The notes beneath the pieces are model-generated. The model saw only the letters and a list, made by a program, of their open reading frames with translations. It did not search any database and was not told the DNA's origin. 64,000 nucleotides of DNA from NCBI GenBank assembly GCA_038087875.1, contig CM075977.1, forward strand, positions 85,622,001 through 85,686,000. The letters are read 5' to 3'. Positions 1,745 to 55,280 of this stretch are shown here, piece after piece. The DNA comes from Malacoraja senta (Eukaryota). How positions within the stretch are numbered: the stretch's first letter is position 1; the number at the start of each line of letters is the position of its first letter. The position numbers and the translations under genes are program-made.

Positions 1745-1815
1745 CCTGTTCAGTGCCACCCCCCGAATATACTTGGTCATGGCCAATAGTGAAAAACAAC
1801 TTGGCAGTGAACAGG
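1745..1815. mobile_element. 71-bp piggyBac-like MITE
   Basis: TTAA at 1741-1744 and 1816-1819 flank 14-bp TIRs CCTGTTCAGTGCCA / TGGCAGTGAACAGG (13/14 match). Confidence 0.6.
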
Positions 1816-2784: not shown

Positions 2785-3525
2785 TTTAATGTGTAAATCT
2801 TACATAATAAGCATTTTTTGATGGACAATATGTAAAGTGCTATTGTTTCTTTTTATAAAATTAATTAAAAAAAATAAAACAACAACGAAAACCTTATTTA
2901 TATAAAAGAACTCAAACTGTACATTTTAAAGAATAAACCATAACTATACAATATAAGGTTATGTGCTTGAGCACTACTCAAAATACCAATTTCTAACAAA
3001 ATACTGGCAACAGTGGCGCCTCATCCAAGCTGTAATATACAAGAATACAAAAATAACCACTATACATTGCTATACAACTATACAACTACTATACATTAAG
3101 TGAGACTTCTTTCTCCTACGTGTTGTCATTATTTCACAATTTATATATCGTTGGTTAATACTGCTAAGCCTTCAACTTAAAAAAAAATGTTGAATGTACT
3201 TTCAGTGCGTGGAGTACAGCTTCCTGGTATCTTAATCCATGCTGTGTGTGAAAAAAGGTCATCCATAAATGCAACAGGACTGGACAACGTTCTGGGCGGT
3301 CGGATGAGGCAGGCGTACAGTGCATTGTAACTTTCCTCATCCTAAAACAATTACATTTAAACAAACAATAGCTTTGTCCTGCAAAGCGTGCAGTCAAAAC
3401 GCATTTATTTTAAGAAAACGAAGTCGAGATGCCACCCTCCATCATTTCCATGGAGCATCCGCATGATCAGTTTGGCCAAACGTTAGCTGCTGATGGGGGA
3501 GTTAAGATGGAAGGCGCTTATTTTG
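2785..3525 (-). promoter_or_regulatory. Probable 3' UTR with candidate poly(A) signals
   Basis: U-rich minus strand after the stop codon. Minus-strand AATAAA at 3404-3409 and ATTAAA at 2785-2790. The true 3' end cannot be determined from sequence. Confidence 0.4.
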
Positions 3526-3612
3526 TTAAGCTGTTGTCCCACACAATCTAGAGGCGGTAGAGAGATCTTTGCTATCTACTTCGGATCTTCCTGAGACCAC
3601 AAATGGCCAGGT
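3526..3612 (-). CDS. msc: Musculin/TCF21-family bHLH factor, exon 2 ([28 protein letters not shown])
   Basis: Read by hand on the minus strand: acceptor tttgtttcaaatttcag|ACC TGG CCA TTT GTG GTC TCA GGA AGA ... TGT GGG ACA ACA GCT TAA. This matches the conserved MSC C-terminus TWPFVVSGR...RLCGTTA. It is too short to appear in the ORF track. Spliced product is 174 aa. Confidence 0.9.
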
Positions 3613-5793
3613 CTGAAATTTGAAACAAAGTAGTTAGAGTAATAATCTTTTAATGTGATGATGAGAAATTTCCACGAATTGGTTCTATGAAATAGGAAAT
3701 CTAGATTTCTTCTTAAGATCTTACCTCAAATTTTGAACTGAATTTCATTAACTCAGATAATGTAACATCCACCAAACACAGATTGTTACTCGATAAATCT
3801 ATATGAGATGGCATTTTCAATTTCTGTTTAATTTATTGTCACGTGTACCAAGGTGCAGCATTATCTATTTTTAATATAAGGTGGGAATTAGTGACTGAAT
3901 AGCAAAGAACAGCCTTGTGATCTATTTTAATAAAGTGGCGGATTGGAGAGTGATGGTTTGGACCAACACTGAAGAAAGCCCATTGCAATATTCATCATAA
4001 CTAGCATTTTTTCCTGAATCCTAAAACAATTACATTTAAACAAGCAATCAGTCAAAATTCAAATGCAGATGAACAATCAGTTTGTGTATGTTTGTATACA
4101 TTAGTTTGTCCTGAAGGGGAAATGGACCATATAGGTTTAACGAATATCGGGCTTATATTATCTTTATTTTGAACATTAACATGAACTTGCTAGGTAATTA
4201 GCTGGGTTTGTTGTTGACCATTCTGAAGGAATTTAAATACAAAAAAACCACCGATCTTTTAATGGGCCTAGATTCAATGTAAGATTCAGACAAAGCATTC
4301 CAGAAATGCAGTCCACTTACTACTGTAGGGTAAAGCACTCTGCAAAATTATAATAGGTATTCAGAAGCAACAGATCTGAAGAATTCTGCATATAAAGCTC
4401 CATTTATCCTATTTTTCCAGAGAATATCTTAAAACTGTTTGAGTTGACCAGTTGTCGTGTAGCTCCGTAAACAACCTTAGATCAGTCACTGGCCGGAGAC
4501 AAACGGAGCTAGCACCGCGTAGTTCCATACACAGATTATAATGCCACTTCCATTGATTTATCCGGCATGTTGACATTTTTGAAGTTAGTAGCACGTTTGC
4601 GTTTGCAGAAATAAAAGGAAGGTTAAATAGACCTTATTTGAAATATGTTTCTGAATCTTCAGTGCAAATGAAATAGTTCCTTTTGTTCAGAGTCAGGTTA
4701 AAAGTTGCATTAACAGTAACTATAGAAATTTATCTTAATATTAATACTGTAACATATATTTACTTATTTGATTAATTGTGACTTATGTTTGCCATTTCGG
4801 ATTTGATAGCAAGTAGGATCTACCGATCCAGGGAGAGACGTCTTCGGTTTGTTTTAAATGATCATTGATTTCACCTTATTCACAAATTCCTTAAAGAATG
4901 AAGACTGCTCTTTTTTTCAGATTTCGCCATAGAAGGAATTATTATTTAATTTGTGACAATGAACAATACTTCCAAGAGTAACTGAGCATTTAAATATGAA
5001 CCGGCCTGGCTTTGTGGTTCGCGAATTTTATCGGAAAGTATTTATGTGAGGGAGCTCAAATTTCTTTCTTAACTTACTGCAATAGCTTTTAATTTCCCAT
5101 AACCACCCTTCTCCCAAAACCTTGTCTGTGTGAAGTCTTTGCAAAACGCGTTCGAGAATTTTATTTAACGGGTATTTGTACTTTACGGGGTTTTTTTTAA
5201 ACGACGTGCAAATGTTGAAGATGCACCTGTGTGTATTCTAAGTTTGCCATCAGTTGGAATAATAGTCAGAGGTGCCACACATTTCACGGTACCACACAAT
5301 TTTAAAGCGCAAAAGGCGAGATCGTATTTATTAATTAATTAAGAGAATTGCATTCGTTTGCTGTATCATAGTGTGTATAATTTCATGTACGAAATCTCCA
5401 CTGGAGCGCAACAAGAATTTAGTGAAGATAGACAACAACAAAAAAGCTGGAGTAACTCAGCAGGTCAGAGAGCATCTCTGGATAAAAGTAATAGGTGATA
5501 TCCAGAGATGCTGTTTGACCTGCTGACTTACTCTAGCTTTTCTAATCTATCATCGATTTAAACTAGTATCTGCAGTCCCTTCCTACACTAAGAATTTTGT
5601 GATACTGATTTAACATGTTCCCTTAGTAAACATTTTAAACTATTACGTTATAGCAGAATTTTTAGGGGGGTAAAGAACATATGAATGCAGTATAATACTC
5701 CATTCTCAATGCCAATTACACCTTGTGCCTAGATCCCCTGGTAGATTTTGTTTTTCTCATGTTATCGAGTTGTGAACTATCAGCAGATCTTAC
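3613..5793 (-). other. Single GT-AG intron of the bHLH gene (2181 bp)
   Basis: Canonical donor and acceptor join PVNL|TWPF in frame, the intron position known for MSC and TCF21. Confidence 0.9.
5426..5589. mobile_element. Palindromic Penelope-like short element in the bHLH gene intron
   Basis: Inverted arms 5427-5484 and 5499-5551. TSD AAGAATTT(A/T)GTGA at 5413-5425 and 5590-5602. Confidence 0.7.
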
Positions 5794-6231
5794 CAGATTT
5801 ACCGGATGAACGTATCCATTTTCGTATTTATCATTTGCTAAGATTTGCCTTAAATGTGCGATGTAGCTAGCTGCCAGTCTGAGGGTGTCAAGCTTGGACA
5901 GTTTGGTGTCCGAGGGCACCCAGGGCAGGCTGATCTTTAACCTGGAGAAGGCTTTGCTCAGGACGCGCATCCTGGCTCTCTCCCGGGCGTTGGCGGCGTT
6001 TCTCTGTGATTGCTTGCCCTCTTTGCCCAGCCTGGCCAGTTGCTTTCTCCTCACAGACCCTCGCGTCTTCCTCTTGGAGCCGCAGTCAGAGCTCGACTCG
6101 TCAGTGTCTTCAGCAGAGAGATAGAATTCCGCCTCCTTCGAATCGTGTTTCAACCCGTTACACTTAAGATGAAGCCCCTGTAATTCCATTTCCTGAAACT
6201 CCTCGGTGTCACTGGGAGATCCAGTAGACAT
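5794..6231 (-). CDS. msc: Musculin/TCF21-family bHLH transcription factor, exon 1 (aa 1-146)
   Basis: MSTGS start and bHLH domain [51 protein letters not shown]...[14 protein letters not shown] donor (CTG|gtaag) follows codon 146, in phase 0. The ORF-track extension beyond this point is intron read-through. MSC is preferred over TCF21 because of KQSQRN, SLPWVP, YVHPVNL and the exon 2 sequence. Confidence 0.88.
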
Positions 6232-6520
6232 GATACCTCTGGAAAATTGAAATGAACCTCAAGTGAAAAGGTCTTCCTGTACAAATTCGTTAAATACCAG
6301 GGAAAAAAAACATACTCAAAAAGACTTCCTTTGTCGAGAAAAGAAACCCCACCTCCCCTACTATCACTTTTAAAGAGGAAGTATTTGGTCTATGTGGGTC
6401 TAACCATTCGGGGATGGGAGTGACAAACACTGACAACCGTGTCCACACGTCAGTGGGGGCGCCAAGGAGAGTCACTCCTTCCATTCCTATTGTGGACACG
6501 TTGACACGTTTCTGTGCCTT
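6232..6520 (-). promoter_or_regulatory. 5' UTR and proximal promoter of the bHLH gene
   Basis: TATA-like TATTTAA on the minus strand near 6290-6296, G-rich box GGGGAGGTGGGG near 6347-6358, and CRE-like TGACGTG near 6446-6452. Position and motifs only. Confidence 0.4.
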
Positions 6521-9194
6521 TACATTCACTTCCAGAGCCCGATCATTTGATCAGCATTCTGAGGTTTTATCGGGCGCTCAGTGGTATATCCCATGTAAAC
6601 TGGGATTTGTGTTGGAAGCCTTCAATCAATCGCTGTTAAAACAAACACTAATTAAACAGCTCATTCTGTTCGCGAAGAGGTGAAGGACTACTGCTGTCGT
6701 TCTTTTTAATATCTGACCTCCCGAAATACATAGGGTTTTGAATAACGTGCAATAAATACAGCTACCACAACTAATAAATGAAATGACTGATGCACTTTAG
6801 CTTTAAGGTAAAACATAGACAAAATATATATGTATAAAATTAGACCCTCTTCAATTCTCAAGTCTTCAATTCTTCAATTTTCAACTGTAAAATTATATAT
6901 ATGATATCAATTTGCTCCTATAAGGTACCATGATATTATCGGATGTACACTTCCCTGGGTTTTATTTCCGAAAAGATTATTTTTTAGTTAATTATTCTGT
7001 TTGCGTAAATTAGAGTAAAAGATTACGAATTTGAAATTAGATTAAACCAAATTCACCAATGTTTAAACCCTGATTTTATTTGCAATTCATTTAAGCCCTC
7101 ACTGTTTACTCGCTTGGCCAAAATCCTATTTTGGGTTGCTGTTCACCTTACAGAATTTCTTATGCTCTTTTATTGCCGTCTTATGGCCCTAGAATGCCCA
7201 AGGCTAGACTGAGAATTAGTCAAATTCGTTTGATGGCAGTCAGTGAAACCAGATAAATTAAGATTTTTTATAACGGATTCGAGGCTCCCCTTCAATGCTG
7301 CATGTATTCCTTGTAGGAATGCTTTCTTGCAGGAAGCATTTGCACCCATTGCAATACACATACAAAAACACAAATATAAGGGTGAAAAGAGATTTTCTAT
7401 ATTTACATGGTCTTGTACTGAGTTTTGCAAAATATTTTATTTAAAGAAATAAATAGCTCATCTCTGAAAATTGGAACCCCCCCCCCCCCAAATGTTTGTG
7501 CAGGTGCGTTTTGAAACGAGCACCTCCTAAAGATTGTGTAGGAAGGAACTACAGATGCTCCTGAAGATTAATGGTAGAATTGATTGATTTTGTAAACATT
7601 GCAGAGATCCTATCGACAGCAGAACGAACCGAGGCCTTATTTTTCGTATCTGGGTGTTTCTTCTGCGATCAGGATCGTGGAAACTTTACAGGAAAGAAAT
7701 TGACCCCAGCCACATCTCTGTGGCGTAACGGGACCAAGAAGTGTCATCGCATCGACCTGTCAGAAGTGGCAGCACTCGTGACCTCGATAAATCACAGTCT
7801 ACAAATGGGAAGTGCTGTCGTCTTGAAGCAAAAGACACCCGAAGATCCCAACTTCGAAGTTTCCAGTTCCTATCCATTATTCAAGTACTCAAAAATGAAT
7901 GACCTTCCAAAAACTGACCAGTTCTATTACAACAGAAAGATTGGATGCTTTGGGTGGGTGGAGTACATTTACATCTTCTAATTATCTCTTTACAAATAAC
8001 CAAATAAACACATTATACTGGTTTTAAACTCACGGAGGTAAGAGGAGGATACATCGTGCACATTTATGTGACTAATCATTCACCAATGTATGGTGAATAG
8101 GGTACCCGTGCAAGAACATGCTGCATACATTCTGATTCTGGCAGAGGCTCAGTGGGGACGATTGTGCTTAAATGTCAGGAACTCAGTCTGGACGTGTGCA
8201 GTGCAAATCACTAAACTTCGGTTCTTTTCAAGACAGACCCCAACGCATAACTATTTATGTCCCATGTAATTAATGGCAACGTAGACAATACTAAATGTTG
8301 GGCTAAATTTCACCGGGAAAGTATGGGGATTAAAATATCAAAATTTACAAAGACCGCAATGCGAGAATTCGCAGTTGATCAAGGATATCGAACCTGCTTG
8401 AATGGCTTAATATGGAAAAATGCTCGATGCTGCATCTCCCCCACGTTTTTCAGATCCGGTTACATCCACCGAGACAAAGTCTTATGAAAGCAGAAAATCG
8501 ATCGGCTCGGGGTTTCTCGTGAGGTCAGACTTGCTTTCTCAAGGCCGGGGGTATTATTAAATGCTCCACAGGCGAACTGATAAACAAACTGAAGGTCCTT
8601 AATTATACCCCTGCCGCTTAACCTGCGCCGCGTGGACTGCAATATTGCTTTAAAAACCGATCTAAGAAGCACGAGACCATTTCAAATTACAAATTAAATA
8701 ATAAGAACTGTTAAATGAACAATTCATTCTGTTGTATTCCACGAAAACGACTTTAATCAATTGAACAATGCACCAAGCACATGGCGTTTGTTATTGTAAA
8801 GGGTGGCCATATGTGATATATTTCAGTATATGATTTCGGTGCAAGTGACATTTGCTATTCCACACTGCATTCGTTTATTGATGGTATAATTAAGAGGATT
8901 AACGTGGCCGATTTGGAACTGTAAAGTGTTGGTGTTTAATGTGAGAACATTGAGATCTATTTGCATTTTTACGAAAACTCGGCAATTAACCATGCCCGGT
9001 ATAAATGTGTAACAAATAAAATATATTTCGTTTCAAATGTGCTTTGGTACTCTAAAACTGCAGCGCTGTGAATTTATATGTGTTGAAATAGAGAGGTGTT
9101 TCATAGAGATAAGCAAGCGTCATTAAGACATATAAATAAATTGTCAAGCAAGCTTAATTTTGAGATACACGAGCTGTATTTGCTGACTTACAAA

Positions 9195-10035: not shown

Positions 10036-10594
10036 TTTTCGTTTTGAAGACAGTTCGTTAGAACACTCCAGAATTCTGACACAAGCAATTTTTTACCTTA
10101 ATTAAATATTTGTTGTGTTAAGACATATATTTAAAAAATATCTATTAGCGTGAAAGTAAGGTGTCCCTGCTCCAAGCACCAATACCATCAAAATCAGATC
10201 CAAACCAGGTTGGACCAGCAAATATTGCAGGAGTTTTCAATTGTTGGACAGCCAATTAAATATCCATGCATGGTGCAATTGTTTAGCCGTTAATGGGATA
10301 AAAACATTCCTTACTATTTATAACATACAGTCACAAATCACAGAACAGTGTTATATTCAAGGCGAAGATTTCTGTCCATCAGGAAAACACTTCTTTTGAT
10401 GCATTGTATCAGTTGTCGGTCAGTATAGGTGTAACTAGGAGTAAACTGAGGAGGAGTAAACCTGATCTAAGAAGCGCCTGGCTGCAAACAAGCGGTGCAT
10501 ATCTTGCATTAGATTATAATGGAAGCTTCCCATTTGGTTTCCCAAGTGATAAGTATCCTGGTTGGGAACATCCGCAATCCTTCGGCGTTCATTC

Positions 10595-10858
10595 TTTGAT
10601 TCCGGCGGGGTCACAACATCAGAAGCCTGGATCGCCTCAGCGCAGAGGAAGAACAAAGCGGGAAGAGACAGAGACTTTAAGACTTTTGCCTCCATCACAG
10701 TGAGGAGGTGCCTGGTGAACTCACTGTGGTGGATGTTAATTTGTGTTTATTGTGTGTTTTGTTATTTATTATTATATGTATGACTGCAGGCAATGAAATT
10801 TCATTCAGACCGAAAGGTCTGAATGACAAATAAAGGAATCTCTAATCTCTCTAATCTC
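10595..10858 (+). mobile_element. GC-rich non-coding retroelement, 3' part
   Basis: 14-bp stem 10691-10733, perfect hairpin TCATTCAGACC-GAAA-GGTCTGAATGA at 10801-10826, then AATAAA and a (CTCTAAT)n tail. Confidence 0.7.
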
Positions 10859-10876
10859 ATTCGCTTGGCACCCAAC

Positions 10877-11410
10877 TGAATTGAATTGAATATTGAATTG
10901 AATTGAATCAATTTTATTAGACAAGTTTGTATGCATACAAGGAATTTACCTTGGTGCTTTGCTCGCAAGGATAACAACACGATATACAGTAGACATTTAA
11001 AAATAAAACATTATAATTTAAACTTGTGAAGAATAAAATAAAATGTGAGAGCAAAAGGAGTCTACAGAATTTTGGCTGTTGAGTAGAGCTACTGCTCGTG
11101 GAAAAAAAAAGGTGTTTTTATGTCTGGCTGTGGCAGCTTTGACAGTCCGGAGTTGCCTCCCAGCCGGAAGTGATTCAAAGAGTTTGTGGCCAGGATGAGA
11201 GGGGTCAGAGATTATCTTACCCGCTCGCTTCCTGGCCCTTGCAGTGTACAGTTCGTCATTGGGGGGAAGGTTGCAGCCAACAGCTGATTGCACGATGCAC
11301 TGCAGACTCTGGATGTCATGCTTGGCGGCTGAGCCAAACTGGACTATGATGGAGAAGGTGAGGGCAGACTCTATGATGGCAGTATAAAACTGGACCATCA
11401 TTGCCTGAGG
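10877..11410 (-). mobile_element. Rex1/Babar-like LINE, 3' fragment
   Basis: MMVQFYTAIIESALTFSI...IISDPSHPGHKLFESLPAGRQLRT...NTFFFPRAVALLN is a typical Rex1 C-terminus. Ends in AATAAA and (ATTCA)n. Confidence 0.8.
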
Positions 11411-14211: not shown

Positions 14212-17200
14212 TTAGTCAGGTTCCTGTGCTGAACCATTCTGACCCTTTAAATAATCAATAAAGGGAGACCATGTTCCAACGAATAATTCCTGTTTGTCCA
14301 ACAGGGAAAATCTGATTCTTTCCACGTTTAAGGTCTCCGTCATTTCTATAATCCACAGTTTGATTGTGGGGGTTATAGGGCCTTTCCAAAATTTTAGAAT
14401 TCATTTTTTTCCTGTTATTATACTATAATCAATAAAGTTTCTTTGTGTTGTTGTAAATGTTTGATTTAATTCTAATGTTCCGAGTATTATTAATTTTGGA
14501 TCCGGGTCCAATTGTGTGCTGGTCACTTTAGATATTATACTAAAAATATTTACCCAGAATTTTTATTAATTTTTATACAGTTTGCAAACATATGAGATAA
14601 GGTAGCTTCTAAATGTTGACATTTATCACATATAGGTGAGATATGTTGAAAGATTTTATGTAATTTTGTTTTTGAATAATGTAACCTATGTATTACTTTA
14701 AATTGTATTAAAGAATGTCTGGCATTTAATGAACATTGATGTATGTGTTGTAAACTTTCTTCCCAAGTATCTTTCGTTATTATTTGATTTAATTCTTTTT
14801 CCCATGTTTGTCTGTGTAAGTCCGTCGATGGAATGTCACTGTCTAATAAAATATTATATATATAAGATATTAATTTTTCTGTATTAGGATGTTTATTCCA
14901 ACATTCGTCAAGAATTTCTGAATTTCTAATTCGAAAATTTTGAGTATTCGATTTTACATAATCTCTGAGTTGAAGATCTGAAATAATCATTTCCTCGGAG
15001 TCCATAAGTCTGTTGCAACTCCTGAAATGTCAGAAAAGTGCCTTCCTTGTAAAGTTGTCCCATATTTTTAGTTCCATAATTCTTCCATTGTGTAAAACCC
15101 TGTCCAACCATGAGGGCTTAAACAATTGGAAGAAAAAGTGATAAATTATCTAATTTTAATGTCTTTTTTAATTGTTTCCAAATTCGTATAGCACTAAAAA
15201 TTATAGGGTTTTCCCTATAAATTTTTTTGTTTAATTTAGACGTAGCAAATAATATCGAGCCGATATCAAAAGGTAAACAATCTTCCTTTTCCATTTTTAA
15301 CCAATCTGGTTGTTGATCTATTTCTTCCAACCAGAAATTCATATTTTTAATATTAACTGCCCAAAAATAAAACAGAAAGTTGGGTAAAACCAAGCCTCCA
15401 TTTATTTTTGGTTTACACAAATGTCTTTTGTTTATCCTATGATTCTTATAATCCCAGAAAAAATCATTAACAATGGAATCCAATTTAAAAAAAAAGTTTT
15501 TTGACAAATATATCGGAATTGTCTGAAAAGGGTATAATATTTGCGGTAAAAAAATCATTTTTATGGCATTAATTTTGCCAACCATTGAGATAGGAAGTGT
15601 TTTCCAATATTGAATATTCTTATGTAGTTTGTTCAGTAATGGGGGAAAATTTGCTTTAAATAATGATGTATATATCTTAGTTCCGTAAATACCTAGGTAT
15701 TTAAATTTTTCATTTACTATTTTAAATGGAAATTGTTGTATTATCTGTTTGTTGTGTTCCCTTATTGGCATAATTTCACTTTTATTCCAATTTATTCTGT
15801 ATCCTGAGAGTGAACCAAATTGGGTTATTAGCTTTAATAAGTTTGGAATACTAATTTCTGGTTTTGTAATGTAAATTAGTACATCATTTGCATATAGAGA
15901 AATTTTATTCACTGTGTCCTTTGTGTTATACCCATGTATTTCCGGATGACCCCTAACTCTTTCTGCGAGTGGCTCAATAGCAAGCGCAAATAATAATGGT
16001 GATAACGGGCATCCTTGTCTACAACCTCTAGATAGACTGAATTTTGATGACAACCTTTGGTTTGTTAATATTCTAGCCGTAGGGTTTGTATATAACAGTT
16101 TTATCCATGTGCAGAATTTCTCCCCTAGCTGCATATTTTCCACCACCGAAAATAAATAAGACCATTCAACCTGATCAAATGCTTTTTCAGCGTCAAGTGA
16201 GATTATTGCTAGATCTTCATTAATAATTCTCTTAGAATAAATAATATTAAATAATCTTCTTAGATTATAATATGAGTACCGTTTCTGAATAAAGCCTGTT
16301 TGGTCAGGGTGTATTAATTTATTCATCACTGTACTTAATCTATGCGCTAGTATTTTAGTTCATATTTTCTGATCTGTATTTAAAAGTGCAATTGCTCTAT
16401 ATGATCCCGGATCTTTCGGATCTTTATCAACTTTAGGAATAAGTGTTATTATAGATTCATTTAAAGTATCTGGAAGTTTCTGTTGAGTATAGATATGCTC
16501 ATATAGCCTTTGTAAACGTGGGCAGAGCAAGTCATAATTTTTTTTATAGAATTCAGAGCCTAAAGCATCTGGTCCTACTGCTTTACCATATTTTAAAGAG
16601 CCAATAGACTCCTCAATATCCTTTATCGTAATCTCCCTTTCTAATAATTCTCTATCGTTTGAATCTAAACCTTTTAAATTACATTTTAGTAAAAAATCTG
16701 CTATTCCTTCTGGTTGTACTACCGTTTTAGTTGAATAAAGATTATGATAGTATTGGAGAAATCTTGGGCATTTTTAATAATTCTCCTGTCTCTGTTCTAA
16801 TTTTATGAATTATTTTTTCCCCTTCCATTTTTCGTAACTGACGTGCTAATAGTTTTTGTGGTTTGTCTCCAAACTCAAAATGTAATTGTTTGTTTTTTTG
16901 ATAAAGTTTTATTACTTGTTCTGAATACATTTTTTTAAATTTATATTTCAATACAGCAATTTTATTATGTTTTAAAATAGATGGCATTCTCGCATTTTCT
17001 ATATCTAGTTGCTTGATTTCACTTTCCAATGTTTGTTGTTTAATCCTGTTCTCTTTATTATAAAATACTTGAGCAGAAATTAATGCACCTCGAACAAACG
17101 CTTTAAACGTTTCCCACATAAGAGAAGTAGGTGTGTCAGGGTTGTCATTTACCTCAAAAAATATTTGAATCTGTTTAGTAAGATATTCCTGGCATGATCT

Positions 17201-18003
17201 TTCGTTCAAAATTTGTGGGTTAAATCTCCAATATGTTTGTTTCTCGGACATTCCATTTAATTTAATTTAATCATGAATGTTACAGGTGCGTGATCTGAGA
17301 TTATAATATTATGGTATTTTGAGTTATAAGTAAATGGGATAAACGTGGAGTCAACTAAAAAATAATCTATTCTTGAGTATGTTTTATGTACTGGTGAGTA
17401 AAATGAATATTCCCGTCCAGTTGGATTTTCAATTCTCCAGACATCCTTAGTATTAGTGGTATTAATAAATGAATTTAAAAATACACTTGATTGAGATTTT
17501 ACTTTTTTTTGCCTTGATGATCTATCTAAGTATGAATCTAATGTACAATTGAAGTCTCCTCCAATTATTAATTTATATTGTGTAAATTCAGGAATTTTAT
17601 TAAATGTTTTATTAAAAAACATAGGGTTATCAAAATTAGGCCCATATGCATTATGAAGAATCACTTTTTCTCCATTTAACTCTCCAACTAATATAATATA
17701 TCTACCATCAATATCCGCTATTGTTGATGAATTCGTAAAAGGTATTCCTTTACGAATTAATATTGCAACTCCTCTGGACTTATGGGAAAAAGAGGAATGA
17801 TATGATTCAGCGCTCCACTTAGCTTTAAGTCTATGTTGAGATTCCTTTTTAAGGTGTGTTTCTTGAAGGAATATTATATCTGTTTTGATTGAATTTAGAT
17901 GTGCCAAAACTTTACCTCTCTTAATTGGTTCATTGATTCCCTTGACATTCCAACTACAAAATGTTATTCCCTGACCCCCTCTTGTCATATTAACATCTTG
18001 CAT
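14212..18003 (-). pseudogene. L1 ORF2p (endonuclease, RT, C-terminal Cys motif), frameshifted
   Basis: Endonuclease motifs SWNVKG, LQETH, GGDFN, SRIDYF, SDHAP. RT motifs LDAEKAFD and RQGCPLSPLLF, but YAND in place of YADD. Split over at least five ORF-track pieces. Confidence 0.9.
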
Positions 18004-18358
18004 ATTGTTTCTAAGGTGGTCTATAACCGAGCAGAAGGTGCAACACATAAAACCTGACCCTGCTACCGAACCTCGAATAGATGAATTTAAAATCATATAC
18101 ATCGCTCTTCCGAACACATCTCCTTGAATTAGTCTTGTTGTTCCATTCAAACATTAAGTTATAAAAATATTTAAAGTGAAAAAAGTGATAGAATTGGTTA
18201 GTATAGGGTGAAAGAAAAAAAACTACATCTACAATTAGTGTAGTTAGTGATAGCCACACTAACGTGGCTAGAATTCTAAAGACTTCCGTAGCCTTTGTAA
18301 AAAAAAAAATTCCCAGCTCCGTGCCCGAAAAAAAAAGAGATTATTTCTGATAATCAAA

Positions 18359-22591: not shown

Positions 22592-23155
22592 TAGTCAAAT
22601 CAAGAGTGTTTTATTTTCATATGTACCGAATAGAAACAATCAAATTCTTACTTGCAGCAGCACAGCAGGTTTGAAAAACACAGAACTCAATAGATTATAT
22701 AATAAACAACCATAAAATAAGTTTAATAAATAAAAAAATACAATTTGTGCAAACAATAAAACAAAGCCCAAAGTCCCTGGTGCAATCAAAGTGGTTCTTA
22801 TTTCAACACTTTTCTTGGAGTTTGTTGCATTCAATCGGCTAATGGTTGTTGGGAAGAAGCTGTTCCTGAACCTAGATATTGCAGTTTTCCGGCTCCTGCA
22901 CCTTCTTTCTGATGGCTGGAGTGAAATAAGAGCATGGACAGTGTGGTGCCAGTTTTTGATGATGCTGGCTACCTTTTTCAGGCAACGCCTCCTGTAGATC
23001 CTTTCAATGGTGTGGAGGTCAGTACTTGAGCAGTGTTCACCACATTTTATGATCTCCTTCCCTCCTGTGCATTCGAGTTGCTGAACCAGGCCGTGATGCA
23101 ACCTGTAGAAATTCAAGAGAGAATAGACATGATCTGTCTGTGAACATGGTGAAAA
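22592..23155 (-). mobile_element. Rex1/Babar-like LINE, 3' fragment
   Basis: IYRRRCLKKVASIIK..HH..HALISLQPSERRCRS...RFRNSFFPTTISRLN, followed by a 3' UTR with AATAAA. Confidence 0.75.
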
Positions 23156-27617: not shown

Positions 27618-27712
27618 TTCACAAGACCATTTTGAATACATAGTTTTACACCATCCAGGTCGTACTGTGCCTGTCGCATTTTTTGGGGGCAATTATAAGA
27701 TTCAGCACAGCT

Positions 27713-28056
27713 TAGTTTAGTTTAGTTTAGAGTTACAGCGCGGAAACAGGCTCTTCGGCCCGCTGAGTCCACACCGACCAGTGATCCCCGCACACTAACA
27801 CAATCCTATATACACTAGGGACAATTTACAATTTTACCAAGCCAATTAACATGCAAACCTGTATATCTTTGGAAAACGGAATTCCCGGAGAAAACAGAAC
27901 TCCCGGAGAAAACAAAACTTCCGGAGAAAACCCACGCAGGTCACGGGGAGAACGTACAAACACTGTACAGACAGCACCCGTAATCACTCAGGATTGAACC
28001 CGAGTCCCTGGCGCTGTAAGGTAGCAACTTTACCGCTGCACCACCGTACCACCCAC
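27713..28056 (-). mobile_element. tRNA-derived V-SINE (HE1-like), full length
   Basis: A/B-box head, V-domain, CR1-type tail with (CTAAA)n. TSD TCAGCACAGCT at 27702-27712 and 28057-28067. Confidence 0.9.
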
Positions 28057-32702: not shown

Positions 32703-33160
32703 TGAAGTGGCAGTCGGATCTCTTCTCCGGCGATCCCCGGCAAGGGATCCCAGGCTCCGGATGGTAAGTCCACACCCCTCCCATGGCTAAAAGCTCTGCA
32801 GACCACAGCCCCATGATGCCAAAGTCACCAGGCCAGCGATGGAAGCACTCCTTTCTGGCGACCCCCCGGCAAGGGTTCGCCCGCTCCACGATGGAAAAGT
32901 CCACGCTGCGCCCACTGCTGTAGCTCTGGGCCCGACTCCGGGAAAGGCTGCTCCAATCCACGCTGTTAGGCCGTGAGGGAGGCGACATGGAAAAAGTCGC
33001 CTCTCCGTCGAGGAGGCGACTGAAAGTGGTTTCCCCCTTTCCCCCCTCCCCCCACCACCACCCTCCACCCCCCACAAGACACACCAAGAGACACCCAAAC
33101 TAACATTTAGACACACCAAAAATGTCGGAATAACGAACACGCTGCTGGCAGGGCCCCACC
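32703..33160 (-). mobile_element. GC-rich non-coding retroelement, 5' and middle part
   Basis: Homologous to 47431-48172, sharing CCTAACAKCGTGGAKTGG, GGACTTACCATC and GATCCCTTGCCGGGGATCG blocks. Confidence 0.7.
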
Positions 33161-33429: not shown

Positions 33430-35165
33430 CAAGAGCTAATTAGAGATAGTCAGCATGGTTTTGTGCATGGGTGATTGTGTCTCACGACTCTATAAGTTCT
33501 TTGAAGATGTGACCAAAAACGTTGATGAGGACAGAACCATGGACGGTGTATATATGGATTTCTATACGGATTTCACCGCGGCATTTGATAAGGTTCCATG
33601 TGGTAGGCTGCTCTGCAAGGTTCGATCGCATGGAATCCAAGGAGAGATAGTTGAATGGATAAAAAATTGGCAGCATGGAAGGAATGCGGTTGTAGCCCCC
33701 GGAGATTCGGAGGCTACAACCGCGGGTCTGGCGGACGGCAACACCGGAAGCCCGTGGGTCCCTGGTGGGAGACCGCTTTTCGGGGCTTCCGCAGCTGCGA
33801 CTTCTCCCGCCCGAGTTGCGGGGTTGAAGAGCACCTGGAGCGGGGCTTTACATCATCCCCCCGCGCGGCTTGGAATGGCCGCGGGGCTTTGCGAGCGCAC
33901 GCCGGGGCTCTAACACCAAGACCCGGTGCGCGACCTTGCATCGCCCGGCGTGGCTTTAATGGCCGCGGGATAATCACCATCGCCCGCCGGGGGCTTTGAC
34001 TTTGACTCTGACTCTGACATCGGGGGGGGAGTGCAGTTGAGAGATACGTTTTTTTGCCTTCCATCACAGCGCTGTGATGGATGTATGTGTAAATTGTGTT
34101 GTGTCTCGGGTCTTCTTCCTTTTGTAATGTATGGCTGCAGAAACGACATTTCGTTTGGACCTCAACGGGGTCCAAATGACAAATAAATTGTATTGTATTG
34201 TATTGTATTGTAAGAAGAGGGTGATGGTGCAAGGTTGTTTTTTGGACTGGAAGCCTGTGACTAGTGGTGTGCCTCAGGGTTCAGTGCTGGGCCCATTGCT
34301 GTTTGTCATCTATATCAATGATTTGGATGAGAATGTACAAGGCATGATTTGCAAGTATGCAGATGACACTAAAGTAGGTGATATTGTAGCAAGGTGTTGC
34401 ATTTTGGGAATTGTAGCCAGGGCAGGACCTACACAGTGAATGGCAGCATTCCATGGAGTGTTGTAGAGCAGAGGGATGTAGGAGTGCAGGTACATAGTTC
34501 CTTGAAAGTGGCATCACAATTGGATATGGTGGTCAAGAAGGCTTTTGGTGAATTGCTCTTCATCGGTCAGAGAATCAAGTATAGAAGTTGGGAGGTCATG
34601 TTGCAGTTGTACAAGACATTGGTGAGGCTACATATAGAGTATTGTGTTTAGCATTGGTCACCCTGTTATAGGAAAGATATTGTTAAGCTGCAAATGGTGC
34701 AGAGATGTTGCCAGGACTCAAGGGCCTGAGGTACAGAGAGAGTGTTGAGCAGGCTAGGACTTTATTCCTTGGAGTGCAGGAGGATGAGGGGTTATCTTGT
34801 AGAGGTGTATAAGATCATGAGTGGAATAGATAGGGTAAATGTACAGAGTCTTTTACCCAAAGTAGGGGAATCAAGAACCAGAGGGCATAGGTTTAAGATG
34901 AGGGGGAAAAGATTTAATAGGAAACTGAGGAGCAGCTTTTTTACACAAAGAGTGGTAGGTATATGGAATGAGCTGCCAGAGGAGAGAGTTGAGACAGGTA
35001 CTATCACAATATTTGAACAATATTTGGAAAGGTACATGGATAGGATAGATTTAAAAGGATATGGGCCAAACACAGGCAGGTGGGACAAGTGAAGATTGGG
35101 CATGTTGGTCAGCATGGGCAAGTTGGGCCAAATGACCTGTTACTACACTGTATGACTCTATGACT
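33430..35165 (+). mobile_element. CR1 LINE 3' half, interrupted by a GC-rich element
   Basis: [35 protein letters not shown] and FFTQRVVGIWNELP motifs. Tail (TATGACTC)n. Confidence 0.9.
33685..34210 (+). mobile_element. GC-rich non-coding retroelement inserted in the CR1
   Basis: Splits the colinear CR1 RT. Perfect palindrome TCCATCACAGCGCTGTGATGGA at 34060-34081, terminal hairpin 34151-34179, AATAAA and a (TTGTA)n tail. Confidence 0.8.
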
Positions 35166-39374: not shown

Positions 39375-39649
39375 AATCTAAAATTAAAAATGTACATGAA
39401 AGCAGTCCTCCTCTACCACAAATTTTGCAGTTGAGTATCCCGCATTTGGGGGAATCACAGGTGTCAGCACACCTGAAATGCAATGGGATAGCCTTGCCTT
39501 GGGAGAGCGGCCAGCTTGACCACCGATTACCCCCTGCCAGATTAGTATGTTTGGGAAGCAACATTGTGGCCTGTTTTGTTTTCCGTTCAACTTAATGTAA
39601 CTCCCTACTGGATTACAGTGGTTTCCATTAGGTGCCTCTTTTACATATG

Positions 39650-43324: not shown

Positions 43325-45145
43325 TCTACTGCTGCACCATTGTGTTTAAGTAAAGTAAAGCTCCAGGAAATTGACATCCCATGGGAACGTCGCAAGGGGG
43401 AATAGCCCTGGCCTCCTGTCATGGGAAGTTCTATGTCATCAGCCAGCTGGCAACTTGTGTACACAGGTCTGGCCTATGATGTCTGCAAGCCATCAAGGCT
43501 TTCTTTACCTGAAGAACTTTGAGGTAAGTGAGGACTTTACCATGTTGTGAGGTTGCTTCAGCATTACTTTAAGAGACCCTGCTTGAGCAGATGCAACTTT
43601 GGTGTTGTGAAGCTGCCTCAGGCATGTCCCCTGTAATTAATATATTTAACTGTGCACCCACCTCCCACTCTACCACCCACTTCCCAAACTCGCAGCCGTA
43701 AACCTGACTCTCCTTACCTTTCATATGCTACTCTGAATGGATCGTGCAGTACCCTACAATCTGCTGACTGCTTTTGATCCCTCACTATCAGAATAAAACA
43801 CACTATCCTTGTTACTAACCCCCCCCCCCCTGAGTAACTCTCATCCACACCAATCCTGAAGGACTCTGACCTTAACTCCATCTGCCCCGTTACTGATTCT
43901 CCCCCAAATTTTGACCACCATGGCACCAAATAAATGCTGGAATTAAACATTGCCTAGACCCTAACCCCACCCTACCACCAAACATTGCTCCAAACGTACT
44001 GTCGACCATTTGACTACAACCCATCTGTAGACTAGTTGGTGCCAACCTCCTGAGTACCAGACCATCTTCCGATCACAACCCCTCAGGCTTTCCTCTCCTC
44101 CTACGTGCGTGGCTGTCCTTGGTTTCATAACTATCTGCTTTATTTTACACTATCCTCAATAGTGGAACGTGATGGAAGGGCTAGTCTCCTTAGGGCCTGT
44201 AGTGATGCCCATATTAACGGATTAATCTCAATGTCCTAGCTGGGCCTGCTTCAATTGATGAATGTGTGTTCATCGCTCATTATTGATAAAATATGTGGCA
44301 CATTTCCTAAACAGTTTTTGTCAACGTTTTCCGTACAAGTGATATATTTTGATTCTAATGCCGTGTTAATTATTCACTGAAATCAATATCTTAGAATTTG
44401 TTTGGAGTTTAACGTCCATTCTTGATGATACAACAAAGTGAATTCCACCAAAAATTATAACTATCGCACAAATTTCACTGTACCAATTGGCGCATGTGAC
44501 AATAAATGGGAACCTGAACTTGAACTTGAACTTGAACATAGCATCGAGCAAATTGACAGAGACTTCGAGTTTTGCTTCAAGAGGCTTTATTGCATGATAT
44601 CATGGAGAGATGGCGGTGATTAACTGCCCACCAGTTTTCTGTCTTTGCAGCAGAATTAGCCGACAGTTATACAGTGCAGTAAAAAATAAAAAATTCTGTT
44701 AGACACAATTATACGAAAATATACTTCGTCCTTGGCTGTATGTTTTCCTGTTATTACTATCTACTACATGGGTATTAATTATTTCATTGGTCATAATATA
44801 CTTTTTGTTTATGTTAATCTTATTCAACAATGGATGGTTAGTACGTCAAACATAATAAAAGGGCATCTTGACATTACTCTATCTCATCTTTCAAGCAGAC
44901 CGCGCCACTGCCCTCTCCCAGAGACAATCATAAGCCCCCCATTGTCTGCAATGTTTCTGCGCTACTAGTGGCAGGGGGCACAGGTGGTCTACCCAACTAT
45001 TGCTGTTGTGTTTGGTTTACCAATGCTACACATTCCCACACAAAAAAAATAGGTATGAGGTCAATTCTAGGAGATAACGCATCTGAAATTTGTTTTGCCA
45101 GATTCCTATGATCTTCTCTGCAGCTGGTCAACAAGAGATGCCAAT

Positions 45146-46031
45146 AAGCGAGTTCGGTATTCTGAAAAATGCAAGGAATCATGGGATTTGTCAAAGGTCA
45201 CTCGCGATAAACACCCTCGGCAACCGTGACGCCGCATGCACACAGACCCGGGCCCGATCCGCAGCCAGGATCGAACCCGTGTCCCCGGCGCCACAAGCAC
45301 TGCCGAACCTCCACTGGACCCCATCCCCATCCCCCCCTGAGCGCCTCATCCCCGTCCGAGGGAGGCCGGAAATGCTCGGGGCGACCCCGGACTGACGGGA
45401 CACCGGCCCAGAGCAGCGGTGGCCCAGGCTCACAGTCAGCATGGAGAAGAAGCGCCAACTCCAGCCCAATTCCGCCTGTCCCGCCCGTCCCGCCTGATCA
45501 ACCAACAGCCCCGGATATGATGGGACACCCGCCTGGAGCAGCGGCGACCCAGGCCCACAGCCAGCGTGGAGGAGAAGCGCCAACTCCAGCCCAACTACGC
45601 CCGTTCCGCTGGGGTAACCGACAGCCCTGGACCTACAGAACACTGGCTCGGAGCAGTGGAGCTAGCGCATTTTCTCCGCGCCGGCTGCAAGCCTGGGCCG
45701 CCACCGCTCCGGGCCAGTGCCCAGCCAGTCCAGGGCCGCCGGTCAACCTGGCGGGACAGGCAGAGCCGAGCCAGAGTCAGCAACCCCCCCCTCCCCCCCC
45801 CCCCCCCCACCAGTCCAGGACCACCCGGACATCTCTGGCTGCCCCGGACAGCGACAGGACACCCAGGAGGGGACAGGGATGGCCCAGCAGCAACTCAACA
45901 GCGTCTGTAGCGCTGGAGTCCGGGCAGGGCGAAACGCAGGTCTGCACACATACAGCAGCACAGCCGCTAAGAATGTTTATCGCAAGTGACCCATGACCTG
46001 GGCATGCGCAATCGGAATACGGAACTCGCTT
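45146..46031. mobile_element. GC-rich non-autonomous DNA transposon (886 bp), possibly ISL2EU/PIF-Harbinger group
   Basis: Bipartite TIRs AAGCGAGTTC(G/C)GTATTC(T/C)GA ... GGTCACT(C/T)GCGATAAACA at both ends. Flanked by AT on each side, giving an inferred CAATTG target. Confidence 0.7.
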
Positions 46032-46345: not shown

Positions 46346-47430
46346 CATCCAACAGCATACAGATCTGAAATAATCATGATCATGATAAAAGCCAGATCTG
46401 AAATAAGGCCCAATACTTTCTATCTATCTCATGACCTTCACATTAACCTAACACATTAACATAGAACATCCTTTGTTGTAGCTTTATCATCATTCTTGAG
46501 TCACAAATAATCAGAGATCATTCTCCCACGATTATATTTTAGAATAGAATAACTGAAACCACCTTAGTGTCAAGACAGGGCCAGGGAAAAATGAATTTAG
46601 ACTCTGGGATAAATTGAAGATGTAGTCACGGAGCTGAATAGATTGGTTGCAGAGAATTTATCCAAATCTGATCCAAAAACGCAACACCTGACAGATCTGT
46701 CTAACCTTAGGTATTAAAGGCTTGAGAGATGGCAAAACTCTCACGGTGGTTTTAATCTGCATTAATGCAACAAGGAAAGTGTGTAAGTAAGTGACTAATA
46801 CTCACTTGGTAAATGAGTAGAAATGATTTTAAAAAAAGATTAAAACTGCCCTTGGAAATCAAACACAAAATTTTGGTTCCTGCAACAAAGATTTTATGTT
46901 CATATGTCTGGAAGATATTGGTTATGGGAAACCACAGAATAGCAGAATCATCAAAGGGTGATTTACTGATCTTTAAATTCAGTGCATGTCAATTACTTTC
47001 CATGAACACTGCTATGAATCTCTCACTTGTCTCTGTCCCCTGTGTTTCTTCTCTCCTGCATGCCCTTATATCACAGTTCAAGAGATTCTGTACGGGCATA
47101 TTATTAATGCAATTTTGCTGTTCCTAACATGCTGAATGATATTCTGAGTTTAATTTTACACGTAATAACTGTTAATATTCTTACAGCATGTTATATGTAA
47201 TTAAAGAATATCAATTATCAGTTGGCCAATTCGATATTGAGCCTAGGAGGCTGCGTGGCCCATATGATCGGTGTGGTGTTCGTCAGATTGGTGTAACACT
47301 CTGGACTCTTGACACTTGATGGTGAATTAAAGTGGGAAATACCCATACAGAGTGTGAGGAAGCGGTCACCTTGCTAACGTTCCAGCAGCAGTAATCGGTG
47401 TGCCTGAGCCTAAGAACTCCATTATCCATT

Positions 47431-48172
47431 GGGTGGCGCCAACAAGTGGCTGCCTCGCCAACAGTCTGTCTGTCCTTTCTTCTGTTTTTGTTATTTTAAA
47501 TATGTGTTAAAGAGTATGTTTTAGTGTTCCTTGATTTGTTTTATGTGGGGGGTTAGGGGGGTGTGGCTGGGAGAAACTTTTTTCAATCTCTTACCTTGAC
47601 GGAATGCGATTTTATTTCGTATCGTATCTCTGTCCCCACTGCGTCCTAACATCGTGGAGTGGTGCGGCCTTTCCTGGAGACCAACTCAGCGTTTCAACCA
47701 CGGGCGCGGCATGGACTTACCATCGTGGAGCTTGCGATCCCTTTGCCGGGGATCGACTGTGGAGAGCTCCAACCGCGTGCCTGTGGACTTTAACATCATG
47801 GAGCCCGCGGTCCCTGGTTAGAGACCGATTCGGGAGCTCCAATCTGTGGAGAGTTTCAACTGTCCTGACCAGGGAGTTTCGATCACCCCGACACGAGGGC
47901 TTCGGATCGCCGGCTGCGGGAGCTTTGATGCCCCCGACTGCGGATGGTTCGAAAGCCCCGACCGCGGGAGAATAAAGAGGGAGAAGATTGGACTTTATTA
48001 CTTCCCATCACAGTGAGGAATGTGGGGAGCCGCTGTGGTGGATGTTTATGTTAACTTTTATTTTATGTGTCTTGTTGTTTTTCACTTAGTATGGATGTTT
48101 GGTAACTCAAATTTCACTGTACCTTAATTGGTACATGTGACAATAAACTGACCTTGAAACCTTGAAACCTTG
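47431..48172 (+). mobile_element. Apparently full-length GC-rich non-coding retroelement (~740 bp)
   Basis: Starts GGGTGGCGCC. GC-rich body with degenerate ~24-bp repeats, stem 48005-48041, terminal hairpin 48114-48140, AATAAA and a (CCTTGAAA)n tail. Confidence 0.75.
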
Positions 48173-48209
48173 ATGCCTACGTCTGCTGAGATGAGGTCTT
48201 GGGTATATC

Positions 48210-48330
48210 GGGTCTGAAGAAAGATACCAACCCAAAATGTCATCTGTCCATTCCCTCCACTGACCCACTGAGCGCCTCCAGCATTTAGCTTTTTGCTCAA
48301 TATGTTCACATCTGCAGTTTCTTGTGTCTC
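48210..48330 (+). mobile_element. Degenerate Penelope-like short element
   Basis: GGGTCTGAAGAAAG...CCCAAAATGTCATC...CATCTGCAGTTTCTTGTGTCTC. Confidence 0.6.
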
Positions 48331-48870
48331 TGAAAGTAAGTATTAGATGTACACAGCGCATATAGTGAGCTCCCTCTTTGGCAAAGCAAAGCATAGTCAT
48401 TCATGGGCAACATAACACAATTAATCCAAGGCCTTGCATATTATTTGAAAGTAAGAGAATATCACATTACCAACTATGAGTATTTGTAATTTGTATTTTC
48501 TGCACCTTTTACAGATGTGGACCTCTTCCCCACCGCATTAAAAAAAAAAGCCCAATCATGGTGGCCTATCCACCATATTCAAGTGGTGTGACAGCACTTT
48601 GGAATTTCATATCTTGTGCCTAATCTAATTTATGTTACAACATCATACATAGAAATATGATTAACCTGTAAAATGTACATTCATTGTTTCTGCTCAATTG
48701 TCCACTTACTTTTGAATAAATCTGTACTGTATGTCCGATGTTAATGAGGAACTGTCTCGTGATATTAATCTTTGTATGGTTTTAACCGATGACACAAATG
48801 ATCAAACACATACAAAAGAGCAAGGAGCAGTACACCGTGGCAGCCATCGTCAGCACCAGCAGCAGCAAGT

Positions 48871-49264
48871 AGTCTTATTGAAACATATATGATTATTAAG
48901 GGATTGGGCACACTAGAGGCAGGAAACATGTTCCCGATGTTGGGGGAGTCCAGAACCAGGGGTCACAGTTTATGGATAAGGGTAGGCCATATAGAACGGA
49001 GATGAGGAAAAACTTTCACCCAGAGAGTTGTGAATCTGTGGAATTTTCTGCCTCAGAAGGCAGTGGAGGCCAATTCTCTGGATGCTTTCAAGAGAGAGTT
49101 AGATGGAGCTCTTAAAGATGGCGGAGTCAAGGGATATGGGGAGAAGGCAGGAATGGGGTACTGATTGTGGATGATCAGCTATGATCACAGTGAATGGCGG
49201 TGCTGGCTCGAAGGGCCGAATGGCCTACTCCTGCACCTATAGTCTATTGTCTATTGTCTATTGT
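48871..49264 (+). mobile_element. CR1 3' end
   Basis: ESRTRGHSL and TQRVVNLWN-type sequence, GGGCCGAATGGCCTACTCCTGC, (CTATTGT)n tail. Confidence 0.88.
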
Positions 49265-53568: not shown

Positions 53569-53899
53569 GGATGGCACAATGGTGCAGTGGTAGAGTTGCT
53601 GCCTTACTGACACATGCACAAGAACAGACCCGATTAAATCCTAGCTACCGGTTCTGTCTGTACACAGTTTGTACGTTTTCCCCATGACCACATAAGTTTA
53701 CTCCGGGGACTCTGGTTTCCTCCCACACTCCAAAGACGTACAGGTTTGTAGGTTAATTGGCTTGTTATTATAGTAAATTGTCCCTAGTGTGTGTAGGATA
53801 ATGTAGGTGTGCGGGGATCGTTGATCGGCATGGACTTGGTGGGCCGAAGGGCCTGTTTCCGTACTGTATCTCTAAACTAAACTAAACTAAAACTAAAAA
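53569..53899 (+). mobile_element. V-SINE (HE1-like), full length
   Basis: tRNA-like head, V-core, tail GGGCCGAAGGGCCTGTTTCC...(CTAAA)n. Confidence 0.9.
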
Positions 53900-54861: not shown

Positions 54862-55272
54862 TATAGAAACATTTAAAATTCTTAAGGGATTGGACAGGCT
54901 AGATGCAGGAAAAATGTTCCCGATGTTGGGGGAGTCCAGAACCAGGGGTCACAGTTTAAGAATAAGGGGTAGGCCATTTAGGACAGACCTGAGAAAAAAC
55001 ATTTTCATCTAGAGAGTTGTGAATCTGTGGAAGTCTCTACCACAGAAGGCAGTGGAGGCCAATTCACTGGATGTTTTCAAGAGAGAGTTAGATATAGCTC
55101 TTCGGGAGCTATCAACGGACTAGCGGAATAACGCAATCAAGGGATATGGGGAGAAAGCAGGAACGGGATACTGATTTTGGATGATCAGCCATGATCATAT
55201 TGAATGGCGGTGCTGGCTTGAAGGGCCGAATGGCCTACTCCTGCACCTATTTTCTATGTTTCTATGTTTCTA
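54862..55272 (+). mobile_element. CR1 3' end
   Basis: Same subfamily as 48871-49264, with a (TTTCTATG)n tail. Confidence 0.88.
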
Positions 55273-55280
55273 TTCAGGTT

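Follow-up and report, generated by a model that had tools for sequence, protein, structure and literature searches.

A repeat family of the skate Malacoraja senta that probably consists of SVA-like retroposons with Rex1-type 3' ends

Introduction

A GC-rich sequence at positions 47431-48173 of a stretch of skate DNA raises the question of what kind of repeat it represents, and of whose enzymes could have copied it. The stretch, called the window here, comprises 64,000 nucleotides from Malacoraja senta (assembly GCA_038087875.1, contig CM075977.1, positions 85,622,001 to 85,686,000 of the forward strand). A reading of the sequence alone had proposed several subfamilies of non-autonomous elements, each paired to a Rex1/Babar LINE through a structured 3' end. 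The known elements closest in build are the SVA elements of hominoids (also LAVA and PVA), non-coding composites of about a kilobase that have no Pol III head and carry a GC-rich VNTR and a borrowed 3' part with AATAAA. SVA rides on L1 by way of its poly(A) tail, which is a relaxed form of recognition; it needs the LINE enzymes and is often truncated at the 5' end.

LINEs of the stringent type mobilise elements that share their 3' stem-loop, and the short tandem repeats at the 3' ends of such pairs are likely to have a role in template slippage (PMC3747384). The principle of a non-autonomous element that carries the structured 3' end of a stringent-type LINE is already well known (PMC3747384). 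A table published in 2013 lists a single SINE for Rex1, SINE2-5_NV from a sea anemone, which has a tRNA head; for sharks and rays it gives the pair HE1/HER1 (PMC3747384). The 3' UTR of Rex1 itself is conserved and leads into variable oligonucleotide repeats (PMC6274825), and the reverse transcriptase region of Rex1 is defined by the primers RTX1-F1 and RTX1-R3, which lie ~550 bp apart (PMC4635592). In a recent survey, the highest Rex1 coverage was found in rays (Batomorphi; PMC13343379).

Results

Copies in the window and their breakpoints

BLASTN and nhmmer searches with each copy against the window joined six sequences, c1 to c6, into one repeat family with 72-86% identity over their common parts. 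All copies named by the sequence-only reading, and the tail at ~44470-44537, were recovered at or near the sites proposed there, and a possible seventh piece (c7) was found beyond the six linked copies and tails. The full-length copy is c5 (47431-48173, forward strand, match extent 47426-48176), which is 742 nt long and is linked by self-BLAST and nhmmer to all the others; contig depth indicates that its flanks are single copy and the element itself is highly repeated. Copy c3 (32703-33160, reverse strand, match extent 33170-32690) consists of head and body only, with an nhmmer E of 4e-31 against c5, and its 3' part is missing where a different repeat abuts. The 5' side of c1 (1-371, forward strand, match extent to 375) is cut by the start of the window; its body and its internal stem (202-239) are like those of the other copies, and its tail is of a different, AAATTCC type followed by (TGATTC)n.

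Copy c4 (33685-34212, forward strand, match extent 33680-34215) is 5'-truncated and starts inside the GC-rich core. Folding and reading placed in it a stem without a loop at 34061-34080, a hairpin at 34151-34179 and a terminal (ATTGT)n. It sits in the reverse transcriptase ORF of a different LINE, and an RVT_1 match falls on the ORF just 3' of the insert. That ORF (33455-33684 and 34213-34439, forward strand) is split exactly by c4, its frame resuming directly after the microsatellite.

The remaining pieces become ever shorter towards the 3' end. Copy c2 (10582-10858, forward strand, match extent to ~10862), detected by BLASTN, nhmmer and folding, is 5'-truncated and retains a stem at 10692-10732, a hairpin at 10801-10826 and a (TCTCTAATC)n microsatellite. 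Only the tail is left in c6 (44466-44537, forward strand), which has a hairpin of the c5 type, a (GAACTT)n microsatellite and a covariance-model match with E 0.026. The weak candidate c7 (3832-3889, reverse strand, ending in …CCTTGGTACACGTGACAATAAA), taken from a pattern scan and reading, may be a decayed tail fragment. Such a series is the pattern expected from LINE-type copying with 5' truncation. Target-site duplications were sought at c4 and c5, and none was clear, being absent or ambiguous. Copy c2 lies tail to tail with a LINE fragment of the opposite strand (LINE1, described below) at 10858-10877, where the two microsatellites are 18 bp apart.

Organisation of the full-length copy

Copy c5 begins with a 5' head (TGGGTGGCGCC..., 47431-47475), common to c3, whose start could be placed to ~15 nt. 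A T-rich stretch (47476-47545) follows and leads into a G tract (47546-47573) that is possibly prone to form a G-quadruplex; both were read directly, and a homologous G tract is present in the alignment with c3. The GC-rich and CpG-rich core (47640-47965) is built of degenerate tandem units of ~23 nt (GGGAGNTTYGATNNCCCCGAC; direct-repeat family D1) and has a GC content of 0.61 and a CpG observed/expected ratio of 0.96. A purine-rich linker connects it to an internal stem-loop, CCATCACAG...CTGTGGTGG (48005-48041), supported by pattern statistics, in which a TGA at 48014-48016 follows the 5' arm. From 48039 to 48147 extends a module resembling the 3' UTR of Rex1 (local alignment to the 3' UTR of a second LINE fragment, LINE2, z = 4.2 against shuffles). 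Within it, an AT-rich spacer separates the internal stem-loop from a terminal hairpin, TCACTGTACC / GGTACATGTGA (48114-48140; dG -13.2 kcal/mol, z -3.6, pair table). The signal AATAAA (48142-48147) stands directly 3' of this hairpin, and a (ACCTTGAA)n microsatellite detected by TRF (48151-48173) ends the copy.

Across the family, the bodies have a GC content of 0.61-0.67 and a CpG observed/expected ratio of 0.64-1.17, against 0.39 and 0.48 for the window. These raised values, together with the degenerate direct repeats of ~23 nt, agree with the earlier description of the bodies as CpG-rich and internally repetitive. When c5 was compared with the bulk of the family contigs over 47500-47900 (run X1), 23 T>C and 15 A>G differences were counted, against 10 C>T and 12 G>A. 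Copy c5 thus mostly has T or A where the family has C or G, which fits CpG decay of an old copy.

Ends and abundance

Logan contigs of four runs were matched to 47131-48472 at 80% likeness. Summed contig depth, which is not a copy number and is to be read as an order of magnitude only, was 5 in the single-copy flanks in the run identical to the window and ~20 in that of a second organism. In the same two runs it climbed to 24,419 and 130,962 at the c5 head; the core had 785-8,974 and 6,089-44,662, and the values for the tail were 136,371 and 715,790. The jump from 5 to 24,419 takes place within ~45 nt, between the bins 47356-47400 and 47446-47490. The element has a sharp 5' edge: thousands of contigs cease to match between 47431 and 47447, and the loose-end consensus there, ...CTGGGTGGCGCCAGCAA, is the head itself. 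In alignment, c3 and c5 start at the same place and share the head and early body in different flanks. The 5' end of the element, about which the sequence-only reading had only asked, is by these two lines of evidence defined.

Depth across the family is biased towards the 3' end; the head is nevertheless deeper than the mid-body, which is not what simple 5' truncation of a LINE gives. These values suggest that a genome has heads in the thousands and tails in the tens of thousands, and the four runs suggest such copy numbers, from thousands up to tens of thousands, for the family in several species. At the other end, 164 and 310 contigs have loose ends that disagree with one another directly after AATAAA (48147), so that the variable microsatellite is a family-wide feature. 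One contig of the second organism joins the hairpin of this very copy to its unique right flank, which makes the c5 insertion older than the split of the two species. Directly 3' of c5, at 48212-48330 (forward strand), lies an unrelated, very abundant repeat with summed depths of 8,129 and 63,101, which contains ...CTGAGCGCCTCCAGCAT...TCTGCAGTT.

The composite could be an accident, in that an unrelated GC-rich repeat or minisatellite happened to lie beside separate insertions of Rex1 tails. Insertions that consist of a tail only do exist (c6 and c7), and many contigs match from 48110 onward only, which means that the hairpin module is also present by itself or attached to different sequences. 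The junction of purine-rich linker, CCATCACAG stem and AT-rich UTR recurs, however, in four copies with different flanks, and the homology between c1 and c5 runs continuously across it. An accidental origin is accordingly the least probable of the readings considered, and hardly credible.

The 3' ends and their relation to Rex1-type LINEs

Two coding LINE fragments in the window have 3' ends like those of the family. LINE1 (10877-11410, reverse strand) is a 5'-truncated Rex1-like fragment that encodes a C-terminal domain and continues into a short AT-rich UTR, a tail of the c1 type and (ATTCA)n. Its domain has 27 protein homologues, with E down to 3e-35, most of which are reverse-transcriptase proteins of ray-finned fish. 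LINE2 (22609-23074, reverse strand; tblastn E 9e-13) is a second, older Rex1-like coding fragment with a tail of the c5 type. Over the last ~105 nt, c1 aligned to the 3' UTR of LINE1 with z = 5.0, confirming a resemblance noticed before, and the alignment of c5 to that of LINE2 (z = 4.2) covers a stretch of the same length; both were scored against shuffles, and both alignments begin directly downstream of the internal stem's 3' arm. Neither cross-comparison (c1 with LINE2, c5 with LINE1) was significant. Two tail types, therefore, each have their own LINE twin within the same 64 kb. A partner for the tail type of c2 and c4 was not found in the skate DNA of the window. The proposal of several tail subfamilies, each with a Rex1-type LINE, thus stands for c1/LINE1 and c5/LINE2, and the c2/c4 type is left without a partner here.

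Further LINE ends were obtained from coding relatives at 37 metagenome loci, collected by alignment of the protein homologues; seven distinct loci reach the 3' end. Five of the seven end in AAATTCC, a hairpin, TTGGCCAATAAA and (GATTCT)n, which is the plan and the repeat unit of c1, and the other two end in ...TTTC, a hairpin, ATGACAATAAA and a repeat, the plan of c2, c4 and c5. Their tails extend 147-286 nt past the stop codon, with a UTR GC content of 0.24-0.37. In the UTRs of these seven relatives neither the CCATCACAG stem nor the GC-rich body was found. In P0022, a database protein of a Rex1-like element, the reading frame runs past the stop codon, which has apparently changed from TGA to TGG, and on through the 3' UTR and microsatellite (...EFWFWFWFW).

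The relatives are 50-59% identical to the window fragments and carry the peptides FSSAFNT and QQRxFFLR 182 residues apart. These are the peptides of the published Rex1 primers, and the spacing fits the ~550-bp amplicon. The forward primer has 4-6 mismatches at a fixed place in the loci, against 8 in random sequence, and the reverse primer gave no match to these loci at the DNA level. The reverse transcriptase region lies outside both window fragments, and the comparison with the primers refers to the relatives. The published hallmark of the Rex1 3' end, a conserved UTR end with tandem repeats, is present in the element. Taken together, a Rex1 identity of the coding relatives is supported, though not proven.

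These LINE ends bear on the simplest alternative, namely that the copies are ordinary 5'-truncated Rex1-type LINEs whose head and GC-rich body are nothing but a long 3' UTR, as might be thought from the LINE-derived look of the entire 3' ~170 nt. The sequence-only reading had itself named this as the outcome that would overturn it. In LINE1, LINE2 and the seven coding relatives, however, the stop codon is followed by a short AT-rich UTR of 110-290 nt without a GC-rich body. The c5 head adjoins a single-copy 5' flank (depth 5), at whose border thousands of contigs cease to match, c3 and c5 start at the same point despite their different flanks, and the head is commoner than the mid-body. We reject a long LINE 3' UTR on the depth profile and the UTRs of the coding relatives, and give this alternative a very small probability. 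That the elements form a discrete family is supported.

Tail types were not as uniform as first described. The 3' architecture had been called constant, and this does not hold for c1, whose tail is of a different and weaker type, with AAATTCC ahead of a 6-bp stem whose loop is GCAA. The pattern ATTTC...TGACAA(W)(W)AA of the other type was observed four times, against 0.07 expected from shuffles. AATAAA is followed by a microsatellite in every complete tail, as had been stated; the repeat unit differs by tail type and not at random, (GATTCT)n accompanying the AAATTCC type both in the window and in coding relatives from other DNA. LINE tails of a second kind occur in the window at 53790-53897, 49130-49264 and 55140-55273 (forward strand) and at 27712-27840 (reverse strand). 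They have a GGCC-GAAG/GAAT-GGCC hairpin and behind it (CTAAA)n, (CTATTGT)n or (CTATGTTT)n, without AATAAA, and look to be of CR1/L2 type.

The terminal hairpin

The three terminal stems quoted in the sequence-only reading, those of c2, c4 and c5, are exact and fold well: they have 10-11 bp, dG values of -17.9, -17.3 and -13.2 kcal/mol, and z scores of -5.6, -4.3 and -3.6 against shuffles. With the register set by the stems, four of the eleven pairs are changed on both sides, and all three copies stay fully paired. The suggestion that the hairpin sequence changes completely while pairing is kept was therefore right as to the pairing and overstated as to the sequence, since 6-8 of the 11 arm positions are common between types. 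Rough chance odds for the covariation between c2 and c5 are ~6e-5. The decayed c6 keeps 9 of 10 pairs and LINE2 keeps 8 of 10; the hairpins of LINE1 and LINE2 are weak, both fragments being old. As judged from the aligned stems, the hairpin covariation, with compensatory two-sided change at the four pairs, is real and has three independent stem types as its basis.

A covariance model of this hairpin matched, beyond its training set, only c6 and one weak relative (L019). Tails of the AAATTCC type have a 6-bp stem, usually with a four-base loop, and the stem sequence differs between c1 and the relatives; the tail of relative L005 folds with z -8.1. RNAalifold gave -0.1 kcal/mol and three compensatory pairs for seven tails of this type, from a MAFFT alignment that is not structure-aware.

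The internal stem and the start of the borrowed part

The internal stem behaves differently. Its pattern, CCATCACAG...CTGTG(G/A)TGG, was found at four sites, with 0.00 expected from 100 shuffles; there are five strand matches at the four sites because the copy at 34061 is a perfect palindrome. The stem has 9-13 bp, its sequence is constant and shows no covariation, and the loop ranges from 0 to 23 nt. That the loop may be present or deleted was correctly seen, the deletion being that of c4 (34061-34080). An exact-pattern scan of the metagenome contigs for the internal stem gave no match.

In c1, c2 and c5 the 5' arm reads CCA TCA CAG TGA. The ORF of the relative L011/L012, whose protein is 99% identical to one of the database matches, ends in ...CCT GCA TCA CAC TGA (...GCATCACAC TGA in L011), and CCATCACACTGA is found in many copies of the family by loose-end consensus. 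The ORF of LINE1 ends in TCT TCA CAA GTT TAA, and MAFFT aligns the ORF ends of LINE1 and L011 with the 5' arm of the internal stem. The likeness of this arm to a Rex1 ORF terminus with its TGA suggests that the constant stem is probably part of the borrowed LINE end and not of the body. A step in depth at ~47990 fits a borrowed module that starts at the internal stem. From these alignments, we consider it about as likely as not that the module starts with the final codons and the stop of a Rex1 ORF.

The internal stem (202-239, 10692-10732) also holds CACAGTG and CACTGTG, the heptamers of V(D)J recombination signals and of Transib ends. This match is most likely a coincidence within the palindrome.

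Coding capacity and transcription

The longest ORF of the family, 123 codons in c5, had no relatives in a word-based protein search and is not kept in other copies; against c3 it aligns over 57 residues only, with 46% identity. In tblastn, the 27 Rex1-like proteins matched LINE1, LINE2 and reverse transcriptase pieces of other LINEs in the window, and none matched the bodies of c1 to c5. The family therefore lacks a conserved ORF, as had been supposed. An autonomous Rex1/Babar LINE is rejected as a candidate, c1 to c5 having no ORF for an AP endonuclease and reverse transcriptase.

ARAGORN reported no tRNA genes in the window, in keeping with the earlier observation that a tRNA head is lacking. 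A search of the whole window with Rfam at the gathering score returned a U1 match only, and at E up to 10 the region 47380-48200 gave nothing relevant: no HDV, CPEB3, hammerhead or other ribozyme, and no 5S or 7SL. A small-RNA head and a ribozyme head are thus both unsupported, and by eye no convincing P1 pairing was seen at the first base of the element. A SINE with a Pol III head was rejected on the lack of a tRNA, 5S or 7SL head and on nine runs of at least four T in the sense strand of c5. Such runs would stop Pol III early, which is an indirect argument for Pol II. With the lack of a Pol III head and the presence of AATAAA, they are indirect signs of Pol II transcription, and we consider transcription from an internal Pol II promoter to be evenly balanced between true and false.

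The family could also depend on Rex1 enzymes without having a promoter of its own, if host or read-through transcripts supplied the RNA and RNA processing determined where it begins. Two runs of putative RNA assemblies contain the family and not the flanks of c5, and in 18-34% of their contigs the family lies inside, or continues into, longer unlike sequence, so that they do not demonstrate transcription of the element on its own; no promoter motif was identified. The head, on the other hand, has no match to a ribozyme family at E up to 10, and the conserved head with its CpG-rich core would fit an internal promoter, by analogy with LINE 5' UTRs and SVA. On balance, we hold a promoterless element to be unlikely, with roughly one chance in four.

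Discussion

Our results indicate that the family probably consists of non-autonomous, SVA-like composite retroposons, ~0.74 kb in full length, that are copied in trans by Rex1-type LINEs. Each element would combine a family-specific 5' part (head, T-rich stretch, G tract and GC-rich VNTR-like core) with a borrowed Rex1-type 3' end that makes up the last ~110-170 bases (AT-rich UTR, terminal hairpin, AATAAA and microsatellite). A Rex1-type reverse transcriptase made elsewhere would recognise the RNA of the element at this 3' end and copy it into the genome by target-primed reverse transcription, and the microsatellite would serve in priming or slippage. Frequent 5' truncation would give the short and tail-only copies, and the 3' ends of different Rex1 lineages would have come to lie on different subfamilies. 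Both the mobilisation in trans and the role of the hairpin are inferred here from sequence comparisons.

The likeness to SVA extends to the G/C-rich simple region, the GC-rich VNTR-like core, the borrowed 3' part, AATAAA and the 5' truncation. In contrast to SVA, the skate family ends in a structured Rex1-type 3' UTR with a microsatellite, which is the stringent type, and not in poly(A); there is no sequence relation between the two, and the host is a cartilaginous fish. With the pairs UnaSINE1/UnaL2 of eel and HE1 SINE/HER1 LINE of sharks and rays (PMC3747384), the family shares a 3' end in common with the partner LINE and a terminal stem-loop in which pairing matters more than sequence, followed by short tandem repeats. 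Those SINEs are short and have a tRNA-derived Pol III head, whereas the skate elements are long and have no tRNA, 5S or 7SL head. As in other stringent-type pairs, the 3' end is homologous to that of a LINE of the same genome, in c1 to LINE1 and in c5 to LINE2. The Rex1/Babar LINEs themselves have the same conserved UTR end and variable oligonucleotide repeats, and Rex1-like coding fragments carry tails homologous to the ones described here; unlike these LINEs, the family has no reverse transcriptase or endonuclease ORF, and its 5' 570 nt resemble neither Rex1-like proteins nor their UTRs. What is unusual is the form: a long element without a Pol III head, with a G tract, a GC-rich VNTR-like core and several swapped Rex1 tails. 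A description of this family was not found in the literature searched.

If this interpretation is true, vertebrates have in this family a long, head-less retroposon that exploits Rex1, a stringent-type LINE, and not L1. SVA-like composites would then be able to arise in animals other than mammals and without recognition of poly(A). With several tail types attached to a common body, the family would amount to a natural experiment on which helper a parasite uses, and the covarying hairpin may mark what the Rex1 enzyme recognises in the RNA. Elements of this kind may also inflate the 'Rex1' content of ray genomes and make conclusions on horizontal transfer less certain where these are drawn from 3' ends.

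A bolder version of the proposal is tentative, and we would sooner bet against it. Skates and rays might have evolved a true counterpart of SVA, a composite that bears a promoter, is transcribed by Pol II and has taken the whole Rex1 3' end from the stop codon on; the stop-codon stem-loop would then be a conserved cis-signal of batoid Rex1 copied by the parasite, and the family would explain a good part of the high 'Rex1' coverage of Batomorphi (PMC13343379).

The window contains other features besides this family. A LINE remnant at 15118-18150 (reverse strand) has an Exo_endo_phos ORF (17257-18150) and an RVT_1 ORF (15118-16329) and is not Rex1-like by tblastn. Within a very C-rich region (45200-46000), in which both strands carry long ORFs and Pfam gave no match, a unit of 125 bp is repeated 1.8 times at 45385-45609 (forward strand). 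An ORF at 5716-6231 (reverse strand) encodes a helix-loop-helix DNA-binding domain (E 5e-17) and is probably an exon of a host gene. The U1 spliceosomal RNA match, at 39385-39548 (reverse strand), is full length (96.9 bits, model positions 1-166) and represents a gene or a pseudogene.
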